From Adineta vaga (Eukaryota; Animalia; Rotifera), in NCBI GenBank assembly GCA_021613535.1, contig CP075495.1, forward strand, positions 9,052,001 to 9,116,000: DNA of 64,000 nucleotides. The letters run 5' to 3'. A program made the position numbers and the translations under genes. Shown here piece after piece: positions 4,428 to 53,372 of this stretch. The notes beneath the pieces were generated by a model. It was not told the origin of the DNA. It searched no databases and was given only the letters and a program-made list of their open reading frames with translations. Positions within the stretch are counted from its first letter, which is position 1. The number at the start of each line of letters is the position of its first letter.

Positions 4428-5494
4428 TCAAATGAAAAACTGAACATAAACAAAAACACATTCTATTAATTGATAATATTCTTGTTTCAAGATCATATAA
4501 GTGAATAAACTAATTAAAATAAAAAACAAATTGGATGTTAAACAATTGATATGATTTTTCGATGACTTAACCAATACTTGATAACATTTTTGTAGGAATA
4601 TTTGAATCTGCTGAATATGTTCATCATTTGCTAACGTATTTTGACATTTCAATTTTAATGGTGATAAACATTGTACATATTCGAATGCATAATGACATAC
4701 TGTTCGATTAAGTTTTGCTAATGACTGATTCCAATGACCACACGAATCGATAATGAATTTTTTCCGACAATGATATTCAACAGCTATTGTTGTTCGACGT
4801 TTTCTAGATTTACGTTTACGTGGTTTTCGTGTTGTTGAACGTCGTGTACGTGGAAGACGTCGAGGAATTCGTATTTGATCATGAAGATCATGACAACCAT
4901 GTGATGTTGCTTGAGTTAAATATACTTTAAAAGTTAGTTTAAGAGTTTCTAATAAAAGAAAGTACAAATCTTTAATCATGTCAACAAAAGTACAAACGAT
5001 GTCGATCCAGTATTGTAAACTCAGTCACCTTAAGAATATCTAAACGTCATTCATCTTTTCAACGAATATGAAAACCATCATAGCAACGAAGTTTCTCTTA
5101 GTTACCTTTAAATGAAGAATGAAAAAACGTGCTTTTCGTAAAAACAATATTTTTACATCTTGAGTTAGTTTTTTTTCCTCTTCAGAATGAAAACAAGCGA
5201 TTATTTTTACCTAAAGCCGGTCCATATTCTTGAACTTCTGTGCAATTTTCCAAGCGTCTATTGACACAATCAACATGTTTTTTTGCTTCATGACAAAATT
5301 CTGCAATATTTACTTTGATTGTTACTGGTGGTAATGGACACTTATGAAATGAAACACAATGAGAAAAAAAAGAAGAAAAATTATGTTGATTCTTCTACTT
5401 TATTATAAAAGAATATATCGCATGAACCATCAGTAAAAACATCGATAAACATTAATAGAACTAGGAAACAAATTCGAATGAGAATCTTGTGCAT
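4428..5494 (-). CDS. Secreted or GPI-type protein with two Cys-helical repeats (RGM-N/neuritin/DUF19-like) separated by a polybasic linker; 3 exons (5494-5399, 5340-5211, ~4948-4428)
   Basis: Spliced product MHKILIRICFLVLLMFIDVFTDGSCDIFFYNK|CPLPP...FCHEAKKHVDCVNRRLENC...YGPAL|ETLKL...SHGC...RRSTTRKPRKRKSRKRR...VCHYAFEYVQCLSPLKLKC..., then a hydrophobic tail. Signal peptide and in-frame GT-AG junctions seen directly. Confidence 0.7.
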
Positions 5495-47756: not shown

Positions 47757-50163
47757 TCATTGAATCAATGGAACATCTTCATCTTCATCTTCCAACATAC
47801 GTTCAACTGAAAATTCTTGGATATTCGATTCACGATTACGAATAATTTTCACCAAACAACTTCCAACAAACATCTAGATAGATGGTAAAATCGTTGTGTT
47901 TATAAGTATACAAAAAACAAATAGTCGAAACAACTTACAAGAAGAAATAACCAACTAAGACAAAAATATACAGCACCAAAAAACCAAACTTTATAGAAAA
48001 ATCGAAGAATTATACGACCCATTACTGTCATTTGACATTGATCTAAATACGAAAAGGCAGTAACATAAAATTTTCAAGTAGATACAAATATGTCTCACCA
48101 GTTGTCACATATTGTGTACAAGGTTTGACTATCATAGTTCCATTCTAAATAGAATGAAAATATTTATAAACAATTTGCTTTACTATTCTGAAATCCTTTG
48201 ATTACATACATGTTCTTTGACAGCATAATGTTGATCACCATAGATAGAATACTGCGGAATGAGAAGATATACGAAGACATTAATTGCGACGACAATAAAC
48301 ATCATAAAAGAACAAAGCATTAAAATAGCTTGTGGTTTTGTTCGTCCTCGAGAAAATCGATACATCTTTGAACGAAAACGAAAGAAATCGAATTTTAATT
48401 ATTCATAATCAATAACTTACTCGAACGCAAAAGTACCAAATACCAAGTTGTTGTAAACCAAAAATTGACGTTATAATAATATAGAGTAATAACAATGATA
48501 ATATAATATAATTCACTGGATAAAACTTTCGAAAAAAAAAACTTATATGCTCGTGAAGAAAAAGATAAAATTATCTTACTTTTCCAGTCCAAGTTAATGC
48601 TACATCGATTGGATTCGGTAATGTTTTATTTCCTTGAGCGAATATTTGTTTAAAATTGACAAAATGTATACATTTATTAATGTTACTCAAAAGAAGTGAT
48701 ACGAATATAAGAAGTGCTAAGAGAAGTAATAAAACACCGAAAATAATCTGTACTGGACGATAAATATAACGGCATTTAAAAAAGAAACTTCGACGAACAA
48801 TTTTAATTGATTCTTCATTTCGATTCAATACCATTTCTTTTTGTTCCAAATCCTCTAAAGATTGACAACATCATTCAATAAAGATAACTTCTCTAAACAA
48901 ACACTTTCCTACCTAATTTGCGTTTTTCACGCGATGGCATTGTTACATGACGTGGATACTATTCGAAAAGAAAATGAATAGATTATCAATATGTTCAGTC
49001 ATTGATTTACTCGATTTTTAATTGCTTGTATTTGAGCTTGAATGGCAACATGTTGCTCTTCAATAGCTTCGTGTTGTAATCGTGCATTTTGTTTTCCTCG
49101 AATGAGAAATAAAGGACAAGCTATTGAACCATAGCCCTAAACAAGAATAATATTTCAAAAAATATATATATATGTATTGTATATGTTGGATTAAAATCAC
49201 CTACTGTATAAACTGTGAGTAGAAAGAAACCGATGATACTTAATGAAAAAATCGCAAATGAAATTGAATCTTGTAGTCCTGAAGTATTTTATAGATTAAT
49301 GATAAACTAAAAAGATCTATTGATTCTATTACTTGAACTATCAAAATGATTGATTAAATATTTGACATTATCCCATTCACTCGTAGAGTTATCCGATGGT
49401 AAGGTGGCTAACTGTGGAACAAATATACTAAAAGCAATGGCAAGTCGTATAGGAAAAATGAGAGATTGAAAGTTTATATACCCGAGTATGAGTAATACCA
49501 GAAGAAAGATTAAAAATCCCATTGTCCATTTTATTGCGGAACAAATTCTCTAGAAAGAAAAAGAAACTTAATTAAAATCAATTCAAATTTTGTCGTACTT
49601 TTGATATCTTTTCTCCTTCTTCTTTTTCTTCGTAATAGAAGAAAAAAAATGGATTGATAAGAAATGCCATGATGATAACAAGCCCGTAGAGAACTAGAAA
49701 TGCATATCTTTGTCGATTTAAAATAGAAAAATAACATCTTCTTACCATAATATCCAATTTCTACGTATTGTTGAATATTATCTCTTGTCGTTTGATTTTG
49801 CGTCCATTCCTAGACAAGATTTCGTTGAATTCCTATCATTCAATATCAATTTCTTTTTAAATCTTACTTTAAATGTTCCATCGGAATTTTTCATAAATGA
49901 TACCAAAATAACATCTGTAGGTAATAGACTAGCCGTAAGTAAAGCAATAATTAATGAAAGCGAACAAGTAACTGTAACGAAATAATCTCGTTTTCGTTTT
50001 TGTTGATATCGTGAAGTAAATATCAATGAGAACAAGACAATCAACTAATCATATCATTAGAATAAATACAAAAATAAATAGAAAGAAAAGAAACTTTTTC
50101 AATACATACTATCGCAACAACAGCAAATGGCAACCAACTGCCCAGTGATGCTAAAACCAGCAT
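47757..50163 (-). CDS. LMBRD1: Lysosomal cobalamin transport escort protein LMBD1 (LMBR1-like family)
   Basis: SLLPTDVILVSFMKNSDGTFK, PFFFFYYEEK, LPNPID, YRFSRGRTKPQAIL, PQYSIYGDQHY, CQMT...KVWFFGAVY, and an acidic tail. Confidence 0.9.
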
Positions 50164-50542
50164 TATTTGTTCTATAAAACAAAGACGAATAAATCTATCG
50201 AAAGAAAAGAAGATTATATAAAGAGACTAGTTTGTACAGATAGATACATATTCATAAAAGAAAAGAAAGAAAACGAAAGAACATAATATCTTGATTACAT
50301 CGATCATAATAATGATCAAAATTATCAAATAGATAAAGACAAAGCTTTGTCGAGACAAAAGATGTATAGACAAATTTATTAAAACTAGTCAGATGAACAT
50401 CTATTAAGACAAAAATAAACACTATAAGAGTTGGATCAACATGGATTGGAATTTTTTTTACTCATTACATTTGTCAACTATATAAGTAAAGAAGAATCAT
50501 CAGTTGTTCAGTCATTCAATTGCATTCTTTCATACAACTACA

Positions 50543-51752
50543 ATGATGAACAATCATCGTGTTCTTCTTTATTTGACTATACTCTTCATTTCGATATTCT
50601 CTATTACATTATCATCGACACCAAATTGTCCTGTAGAAGGTAGAGAGAGAGAGAGAAGAAAATTGTTTTACCTTTCGAAAATAATTAACTAAAAACTTTT
50701 TCTTTCAACATATTAAGCTGATCCAGCATCGATTCTTAGTTGTGTTGCGATTGATGCCGTTGGATTAGTTCAAGCAACCAAAGGAAATTTAAGAGTATTT
50801 TGTACAATGGCAGAACGGTTTATGGAATGTGTGAAAACTAAAACACGTGGTTGTGTTGGCGAAGAAGTATACATAGAAAAGATCGTTTTCTTTCATTTAA
50901 ATAGTATTGACTTTCTCTGTTTTTAGTTTGTACGTGGATCTTTAACAGAATTGATTGAATTATCACAAAAATGTTGTGCGAATAAGAATGAAAAAATCAG
51001 TGAAGAATGTCCATTTATTGGTTCGTAAATCTTTAATAAAAATAATATTCGAATCGTTCTTACTTTTTAGCACGACCTCAATGCTTTTCATTAGATGATA
51101 CAGTACAAACATCGGATGGTGACGAAATATCGATTAGAAATCTTCAAATAGGTCAAAAAGTATTGGCGTTTGATCATATTGATCAAATTATTTCGACAGA
51201 AATTATTGCGATGTTACATTATGAAAATAATTCTCAAGGTAAATAAAAGATTTGATTATTTTAAAAAGAAATATTTTCCGTTTTTCAGCACTTTTTTATA
51301 CATTTACAACTGAGTCAGGTCATCAACTTTCATTAACATCGGAACATTTAATCTACATTGGTAATCAAAGTTATATTCAAGCTCGTCATATCGATTCAAA
51401 AGTACATCAATTATTTACTATCGAACAAAATGGTCTCTTGAAATCATCAGCTATTCGTTCAATTGATGTACAACTTAAATATGGCTATGCAACACCGATT
51501 ACTCAACATGGAACATTACTTGTCAATCGTATTAGTTCATCATGTTATGCATCTATTCATCATCATTCAATAGGACATATAGCTATGGCACCTTTACGTT
51601 GGATTCATCAAACTAAACAAATATTTGGTTTGATCGACACGAAGGAGACAAATGAAAATGGTATACATTGGTATCCAAAAGCTTTGAATAATATTGTTCA
51701 TACATTTATTCCTTTTCCTGGATTATTTACAACTACTACCGGCACAATCTAA
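50543..51752 (+). CDS. Hedgehog-related Hog-domain protein: signal peptide, small Cys-rich N-domain, then Hint/SRR; 5 exons
   Basis: Exons about 50543-50639, 50718-50866, 50927-51020, 51071-51238 and 51289-51752. Hint start PQ|CFS, IRNLQIGQKVL, LSLTSEHLIY (TxxH), GYATPITQHGTLLVNRISSSCYA, HHSIGHIAMAPLR, GIHWY. Confidence 0.9.
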
Positions 51753-52460
51753 GACATAAATTAAGTACTATAATCTAACAACGATAGATCTATTTAAATG
51801 AACATATTAAAAAAAAAACTCTTCTCTCCTTTATAGAATGTCACAAAAATTAATTATATTCTAGAATTGTAAAATAAAGAACTACTCACTTGATGTATAT
51901 ATTTATTTAATATGAAATAAAAGACAAACAAATATATTAAAAATGAGTATTCTTTCTTTTGTTTTGTTTTATTTGAGTCATTACTATTATCTTTGAATTG
52001 GTATGGTAGAGATGACGATAAACAGTAACGAATGAAAACAAAAAGAGATGATCAACAGATGACAGTAATTTTTGATAGATCGTATCTTCATGAAATCTAA
52101 GAAATTTTTATTCGAAAAAATATCATACAAATATTTCTATTCACGCTCATTATATCTATATATTAATTATATATTCAATCGTCTTTGTACACAAGAAACT
52201 ATATTAATAATAAGATGTGTAAGTCAAGACATATTCTTTATATATCGTCTAGATTCAGTACAATAACCTCTCTATTAGATATAGATTTTTGATAAGTTGA
52301 GTGTATCATATATCAATACATGGATGAGTGATTTTTGTTCATAGAAAAAAGAAAAGAGACAGGCACTTTCAATATGTATGCACATTATAACTGGATATCA
52401 ATGTGAGTGACTACATTGAATTAGTAGTATATAAAAACTATCTATTAAATTTCAGTAATT

Positions 52461-53372
52461 ATGGTTAGCATATTTCGTTTATCAGAAACGCGTTCTCGTC
52501 AAGGACAAGATAATTTCTTTCTTTGGTCCATGGTAATTCTTCCGTTTCTGGCTCAAAGTGCTTATATATTTGATGCATTTTATTATTTAACACATCAAAC
52601 AGATGGCAATGGTTATGAAGGTTTACTTTCAACGATTTTAATCGTATTTACATATCTTCGCTATTGTTCACCTATGGAATGTCGTCTATCTCTTTGTGTA
52701 TATTACATATTCTTATGTTTACTTAGTGAAATTGGTAATATTGGTTATATGATAGCATTTATCATGAAAAAAGATATCTTTTTTACTATTGTTTATGGTT
52801 TCTGGGGTTTTATTGAATTAATAATGACGATAATGTTAATATATTGTCGAGTTGTGATGAGATATCAAGTAAATTTCATTGTGGAAAACAAACATCTGTT
52901 TCATTTTATGTCACGATTAGAAATTATTCTTGCAATATTTATTCCATATTTTATTAGTAAAAATTTTACAACATTAACAAAGGATTCAATTGCATTCTTC
53001 ATATTATTTGATTTTTTTTCGGCTTCATATGTACGTTTTCAAGGTATATGGATCAAATTAACATTGTATCTATTTGTAACAACTGTAACAGCAGCTGTTG
53101 CAGCTGAATGGCTTTATTTTGCAGAAAAATTTCATTACTATGAACAAATATCTGCAGTTAGTGAATTGATTTCAGCCGTATTATGTAATTTGTTGATTAT
53201 TTTACAATTTTTTCCATATCATTTCACACCAGATCATATTGAAAAAATAGCACGCGAAGGTTTTATATTTCAACAACGTCTTAGTTCAGCTTTGATGAAC
53301 AAAAATGAAGATCAACATGTTACAATAGAAAAAGTAGAAAAACCTGTTTCCACTATTGATTCTCATTGTTAA
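52461..53372 (+). CDS. Intronless multipass (about 7-8 TM) membrane protein of unknown family
   Basis: Single 303-aa ORF with many hydrophobic segments and a hydrophilic C-tail. TATA-like TATAAAA at ~52430. Confidence 0.7.
   Translation: MVSIFRLSETRSRQGQDNFFLWSMVILPFLAQSAYIFDAFYYLTHQTDGNGYEGLLSTILIVFTYLRYCSPMECRLSLCVYYIFLCLLSEIGNIGYMIAFIMKKDIFFTIVYGFWGFIELIMTIMLIYCRVVMRYQVNFIVENKHLFHFMSRLEIILAIFIPYFISKNFTTLTKDSIAFFILFDFFSASYVRFQGIWIKLTLYLFVTTVTAAVAAEWLYFAEKFHYYEQISAVSELISAVLCNLLIILQFFPYHFTPDHIEKIAREGFIFQQRLSSALMNKNEDQHVTIEKVEKPVSTIDSHC

Follow-up and report, generated by a model that had tools for sequence, protein, structure and literature searches.

Organization of the locus

The window, i.e. 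the whole stretch of 64,000 nucleotides of Adineta vaga DNA that was analysed, contains on its plus strand a gene made of five exons and four GT..AG introns. Once joined, the exons give 972 nt encoding a predicted precursor of 323 aa with no internal stop, in which 8 Cys precede the cleavage junction and a Hog domain follows it. The features of the gene are given below in window coordinates.

50479..50485, plus strand: TATA-like box (TATATAA), read from sequence only, 64 nt 5' of the ATG
50543..50639, plus strand: exon 1, encoding a predicted signal peptide (approximately aa 1-25) and the first of the N-domain Cys residues
50640..50717, plus strand: intron 1, 78 nt, phase 1, GT..AG; same intron in the C5 ohnologue
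50718..50866, plus strand: exon 2, core of the N-domain with FC-x8-C-x7-C-x-G; its last residue, E82, aligns with RGMB L103
50867..50926, plus strand: intron 2, 60 nt, phase 0; position common to the C5, C3 and C6 paralogues
50927..51020, plus strand: exon 3, final helix of the N-domain, CC and last Cys; R85 aligns with RGMB H106
51021..51070, plus strand: intron 3, 50 nt, spliced in RNA-type contigs of three runs from two studies
51071..51238, plus strand: exon 4, junction between Q117 and C118, N-terminal part of Hint, H163; Pfam Hint match
51239..51288, plus strand: intron 4, 50 nt, removed in an RNA-type contig of run X1
51289..51752, plus strand: exon 5, T186xxH189, SCY with C255, sterol-recognition region (SRR), stop
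51873..51878, plus strand: AATAAA; RNA-type contigs extend to 51872

A gene for an LMBR1-family membrane protein (48571-50163, minus strand, Pfam E 2.5e-8) lies head-to-head with the Hog gene, and LMBR1-family-like sequence is also found alongside the C5 ohnologue. This neighbour seems to resemble LMBRD1, and an echo of the vertebrate Shh-Lmbr1 linkage was rejected. On the other side, at 52461-53372 of the plus strand, an intronless ORF encodes a putative multi-pass membrane protein of 303 aa with no Pfam match.

Gene structure and transcript evidence

The five-exon model put forward in the first-pass annotation was borne out by its GT..AG introns and by the public Adineta vaga protein I4U23_008606 (P0033), a 100% match to each of the five exons. 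P0033 was only aligned and compared and did not serve as a search query: searches with the window gene used its exons singly, and for the whole domain the queries were the orthologue P0030 and further public relatives. The genome searched (G000) comprises 6 contigs and 100.8 Mb. The signal peptide was judged by hydrophobicity only, the Kyte-Doolittle average reaching 2.6 in the hydrophobic core.

RNA-type contigs from two studies show intron 3 removed in runs X1, X2 and X3 and intron 4 removed in X1, and the last N-domain exon is therefore joined to the Hint exons. The proposed placement of an 8-Cys N-domain upstream of Hog on one spliced transcript agrees with the removal of intron 3 in all three runs and with L058, an intronless contig from a relative in which the five exon equivalents are contiguous, the first four of them in one frame. 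Transcripts thus bear out the predicted splicing for introns 3 and 4 but not for introns 1 and 2, for which none was seen in the local RNA-type contigs of the runs examined. For these two introns splicing is supported by relatives, namely L058 and the C5 ohnologue, whose four GT..AG introns share the positions and phases of those in the window gene.

In X2 and X3, low-depth contigs extend into intron 2 or across it, and the X3 contig also enters intron 1. Between 50675 and 50926, intron 2 is retained in both runs and intron 1 in part in X3, and one of the two contigs at the same time has intron 3 spliced out. Retention of intron 2 may reflect partly processed RNA or pre-mRNA, or genuine retention; if real, the frame would end at the intron's terminal TAG and the protein would be truncated before the last helix of the N-domain.

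The Hog gene is a real gene. An artefactual fusion of N-domain and Hog was also considered and was discarded, intron 3 being spliced and the architecture being kept as far as Seison.

A complete Hog domain with variable junction residues

Pfam Hint is matched above cut-off by exon 4 (E 8e-9) and exon 5 (E 4e-30). C118 (codon 51082-51084) corresponds to Hint Cys1, T186 and H189 (codons 51336-51347) to Hint 69 and 72, C255 of the SCY motif (codon 51543-51545) to Hedgehog (Hh) C143, and H163 (codon 51217-51219) falls exactly on Hint position 46, the general-base site. Every Hog catalytic position is occupied (C1, T69xxH72, SCY, SRR), and the complete Hog domain recognized in the first-pass annotation is confirmed by the Hint matches and by C118, T186, H189 and C255. 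The orthologue P0030 aligns with Drosophila Hh through Hint and SRR (E 3e-20), and equivalents of C1, T69, H72 and C143 are present in every bdelloid full-length family member that is readable there. The SCY cysteine was reported to be necessary for Hh autoprocessing (PMC12054796). In P0059 (L057), an intronless sequence and a probable monogonont member, Asn replaces this cysteine.

Where Hedgehog has a Gly at -1 and an Asp at Hint position 46, the window gene has Gln117 and His163. Paralogues C3 and C6 carry Asp at position 46, and the -1 residue is Lys or Arg in paralogues. About 40 exon-level Hog matches were found in the A. vaga genome; some of its Hog loci have His at position 46 and others Asp, and the residue at -1 differs widely among them, so that a Gln-Cys junction and a His-46 are ordinary for a rotifer Hog. 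An engineered D46H Hedgehog (PDB 6TYY) retains the structure and remains active, with a broader choice of sterols (PMC9163320; PMC8529194), and D46H Hedgehog autoprocesses in cells (PMC12054796). The two departures from Hedgehog pointed out in the first reading are therefore present but not special to this gene, and His-46 as the mark of a dead or unique enzyme was discarded, D46H being active and His-46 recurring in other Hog genes of the genome.

Resemblance of the N-domain to RGM-N

A profile built from 43 N-domain sequences and compared with all PDB sequences gave seven matches at E<=10, all of them RGM N-domains (RGMA, RGMB, hemojuvelin). The best one, RGMA (E 7e-4), is colinear over profile positions 10-77, i.e. 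about 68 of 88. In Pfam, RGM_N was the family matched by most members, although these were 7 of the 43 and the best E value, 0.0098, lies below the curated cut-off; no Pfam match was obtained for single N-domain exons, and single sequences mostly match nothing. The remote RGM-N similarity suspected from cysteine spacing thus held up in the profile search. The similarity to neuritin suggested along with it did not, since Pfam NRN1 was matched by none of the 43 members at E<=10 and nowhere in the genome, and membership of the neuritin family was accordingly dropped.

The AF2 model of the N-domain is all-helical (pLDDT 75.6; single-sequence AF2 was poor, pLDDT 55). This model and the absence of Hedge (PF01085) matches among N-domain members agree with the view that the N-domain is not a Hedge domain. 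It also appears distinct from the described Hog cargos that have a Pfam model, as Wart, Ground/Ground-like and Qua found no match in the 43 members. With the N-domain model as query, Foldseek placed RGMB and RGMC at the top, and they account for 7 of the 8 rows, with weak scores (E 5-9, TM 0.36). A VIA comparison with RGM-N gave Z 4.5 and rmsd 4.1 over 66 residues (overall rmsd 4-5 A), a weak match, and a wide VIA search returned only generic helical bundles, which scored above RGM-N. The structural check thus agrees with an RGM likeness in its top Foldseek rows but not in the strength of its scores.

In its known features the N-domain is like RGM-N of RGMA, RGMB and hemojuvelin (PF06535) in being a predicted helical bundle with C...FC-x8-C-x7-C-x-G followed by a helix ending in Cys. 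It differs in having 8 Cys against three disulfides, no RGD/RGN, and Glu and Arg at Leu103 and His106. The precursor is also unlike RGM in that vWD/RGM_C (GDPH site) and a GPI signal are absent and Hog comes after the N-domain. Altogether the N-domain is probably a remote homologue of RGM-N, and it seems to belong to a wide assortment of small Cys-helical domains and not to descend from RGM itself.

The resemblance could be convergent, i.e. a similar Cys spacing on a common bundle, the cargo being either a domain peculiar to rotifers and unrelated to RGM-N or the diverged N-terminus of a Lophohog. Convergence would account for RGM_N matches that stay below the Pfam cut-off (7/43, best E 0.0098) and for the weak fold scores of Foldseek and VIA. 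Nevertheless, two separate searches, by PDB sequence (7/7 matches) and by Foldseek (7/8 rows), both pick RGM-N, and the sequence match is colinear over most of the profile. A Lophohog origin meets the further difficulty that no mollusc or annelid Hog appeared among the identified matches in 1.84 billion proteins. We regard a convergent or Lophohog-derived cargo as unlikely and keep remote homology to RGM-N as the preferred reading.

An N-domain family in rotifers

Four close copies of exon 2 are present in the genome, each 5' of a Hog domain. A third group is recovered with a wider profile, which brings the count to about seven N-domain genes. A no-index profile search of 1.84 billion representative proteins gave 52 matches. 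Those that could be named belong to bdelloids (Adineta, Rotaria, Didymodactylos), to Seison nebaliae and to one Haliotis repeat protein (E 1e-4); we infer that some further matches are from monogononts. Hog directly follows the N-domain in all full-length rotifer members, the remaining matches being exon-sized gene calls. Among the Hog-linked sequences retrieved, all members of the N-domain family come from rotifers (Bdelloidea, Seisonidea and further assemblies). The survey of the architecture across rotifers and other spiralians thus extended it to bdelloids and Seison, but none of the identified profile matches was a Hog protein of a mollusc or an annelid. A feature search of the ESM Atlas returned no match. 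On a tree of Hog domains, a single origin of the N-domain members is neither shown nor rejected (p-AU 0.19).

The eight Cys are invariant in all members wherever the column is filled. Between orthologues the N-core is 90-93% identical, against 53-79% for Hint, and this very high conservation implies a constrained binding surface or a fixed protein partner, such as a receptor or a matrix protein.

In the Seison proteins P0062 and P0072 the unit of N-domain and Hog is preceded by about 720 and 110 additional aa, one of these extensions being Thr-rich. The Haliotis protein P0094 has related Cys-helical repeats, no Hog, a hydrophobic GPI-like tail and a weak RGM_N match (E 0.047). Within the window itself, a probable multi-exon gene on the minus strand (about 4430-5494) has two helical C-x8-C-x7-C units, together with a signal peptide and a tail that is hydrophobic and GPI-like; it shows weak similarity to the Hog-fused N-domain profile and no Pfam match.

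Residues for BMP binding

The first-pass annotation had raised the possibility that the released N-domain acts as an RGM-like BMP/GDF co-receptor or antagonist. Profile similarity to the N-domains of RGMA, RGMB and RGMC (RGMA/B/C) speaks for it, and so does the preservation, in 38 of 43 members, of the Gly that corresponds to RGMB G101. In RGMB, however, G101, L103 and H106 form the interface with BMP2/GDF5, and L103E and H106R abolish binding (PMC7354924). A gap-free count from C78, aligned with RGMB C99, places G80, E82 and R85 of the window protein at these three positions; E82 and R85 are thus the binding-abolishing substitutions, and to judge from the residues RGM-style BMP binding and modulation by the N-domain are unlikely. 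Across the family, Leu was found in 0 of 29 members at the L103 column, His in 0 of 28 at the H106 column, and Arg at R100 in none, and of the RGD/RGN loop, absent from the window N-domain, only the Gly is kept.

The genome has in addition a separate divergent RGM_C gene, which also counts against the co-receptor. This gene (L055 1525-2379; G000:C2:8448931) has a GDPE-type motif, not GDPH, and a hydrophobic tail, and no RGM_N match was found for it. A Cys-helical ORF with a weak DUF1397 match lies upstream of it. A role as BMP modulator in the RGM mode was accordingly not borne out, and as an account of the released N-domain it must be considered very unlikely.

Hedgehog pathway genes in the genome

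Pathway genes were searched by exon-wise HMM without a positive animal control, which makes the absences provisional. The Hedge domain was not found in the genome by this approach, nor was Smoothened, the Frizzled-family matches being Frizzleds and an adhesion GPCR. No clear Patched was obtained either: sterol-sensing-domain matches were NPC1, SCAP and Dispatched-like, plus a small NPC1-adjacent fragment (L068). At least 4 Dispatched-like loci are present. With about 40 Hog matches and no Hedge, Smoothened or clear Patched found, the state of the pathway, as far as these searches go, resembles that of nematodes.

The genome also has an intronless gene of 725 aa resembling oxidosqualene cyclases (L079 1480-3657, minus strand; G000:C1:10786520), with 711 bits for TIGR03463, below cut-off, and 275 bits for hopene cyclase. 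Its presence suggests that sterol synthesis is possible.

Proposed mechanism and alternatives

We lean, with some reserve, towards a Hog-type precursor that self-cleaves between Q117 and C118 and yields a surface N-domain anchored by sterol in place of GPI. By analogy with Hedgehog chemistry, the precursor would enter the ER and lose its signal peptide. C118 would then attack the carbonyl of Q117, aided by T186 and H189 (and C255), and H163 would be the general base in the reaction with a sterol bound by the SRR. The product would be a disulfide-bonded N-domain of about 92 aa whose C-terminus is esterified with a sterol. This lipid would tether the N-domain to the outer membrane, doing the job of the GPI anchor in RGM and other Cys-helical proteins, and one of several Dispatched-like transporters may release it. 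Its partner, a receptor or matrix protein, is probably not BMP in the RGM fashion, and a canonical Patched/Smoothened pathway would probably not be involved.

The well-kept SRR motifs and the alignment of the Hog with Drosophila Hh argue for sterylation, and Cys-helical relatives without Hog that carry a GPI-like tail (the Haliotis protein and the minus-strand gene of the window) argue for replacement of GPI. Against the model count Gln rather than Gly at -1, the Asn in place of the SCY Cys in P0059, introns 1 and 2 unseen spliced in A. vaga and the weak structural match to RGM-N.

The precursor might instead hydrolyse or stay uncleaved, its N-domain being a soluble or matrix-bound structural protein like the nematode Hh-related proteins. 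In C. elegans these are components of the apical matrix, i.e. cuticle or pre-cuticle (PMC10793445), and the nematode-like genome, with its many Hog matches, its varied junctions and no Hedge or Smoothened found, fits such a role, as does a -1 residue other than Gly. The preserved SRR motifs, the presence of a general base and the multiple Dispatched-like genes point the other way, and a matrix role would be compatible with sterylation. A purely structural or non-lipid fate seems rather improbable, and sterol anchoring by self-cleavage is retained as the preferred reading. The full scenario, in which an RGM-N-superfamily domain was joined to Hog, self-sterylation took over from GPI, a Dispatched-released ligand acts on a receptor of its own and Hedgehog, Smoothened and Patched were lost, is speculative and is proposed with low confidence.

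Relation to known Hog proteins and significance

Hedgehog is, to our knowledge, the only protein for which self-catalysed covalent attachment of a sterol is well established, and most Hog cargos have no recognizable homologue. The known carriers of RGM-N-type domains are GPI-anchored. Since the cargo traces weakly but specifically to such a domain, Hog is suggested to be a swap-in device for lipid anchoring.

Hog proteins with non-Hedge N-termini are known from nematodes (Warthog, Groundhog, Quahog), as Lophohog, and from cnidarians and protists (Burglin 2008, PMC2362128). The window protein shares with them a predicted signal peptide, a Cys-containing secreted N-domain and a complete Hint and SRR. 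It differs in an N-domain that lies outside the Pfam-modelled cargos and is distantly RGM-N-like, and in a family seen only in rotifers. Its resemblance to Drosophila Hh (PDB 6TD6/1AT0) lies in C1, TxxH, SCY and SRR, and to engineered D46H (PDB 6TYY) in the His at the general-base position; unlike Hedgehog, it has no Hedge domain, a Gln-Cys instead of a Gly-Cys junction and no predicted N-terminal Cys for palmitoylation. Lophohog (Lottia and Capitella proteins; ELU16390, XP_009065705) was compared through the N-domain profile, whose identified matches included no Hog from molluscs or annelids. No paper describing a rotifer RGM-N-like Hog family was found. On these comparisons of sequence, the protein is probably a novel cargo on a known Hog module, new N-termini on Hog being a recurrent theme.

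The A. vaga genome has many Hog genes, and new Hog cargos are already a known theme. If the full scenario above holds, the product would be a sterylated signal other than Hedgehog that occurs in nature, and D46H enzymes would occur there too. The natural His-46/Asp-46 paralogue pairs on the same cargo offer a direct test of whether nature makes use of the broad-specificity D46H enzyme known from engineering.
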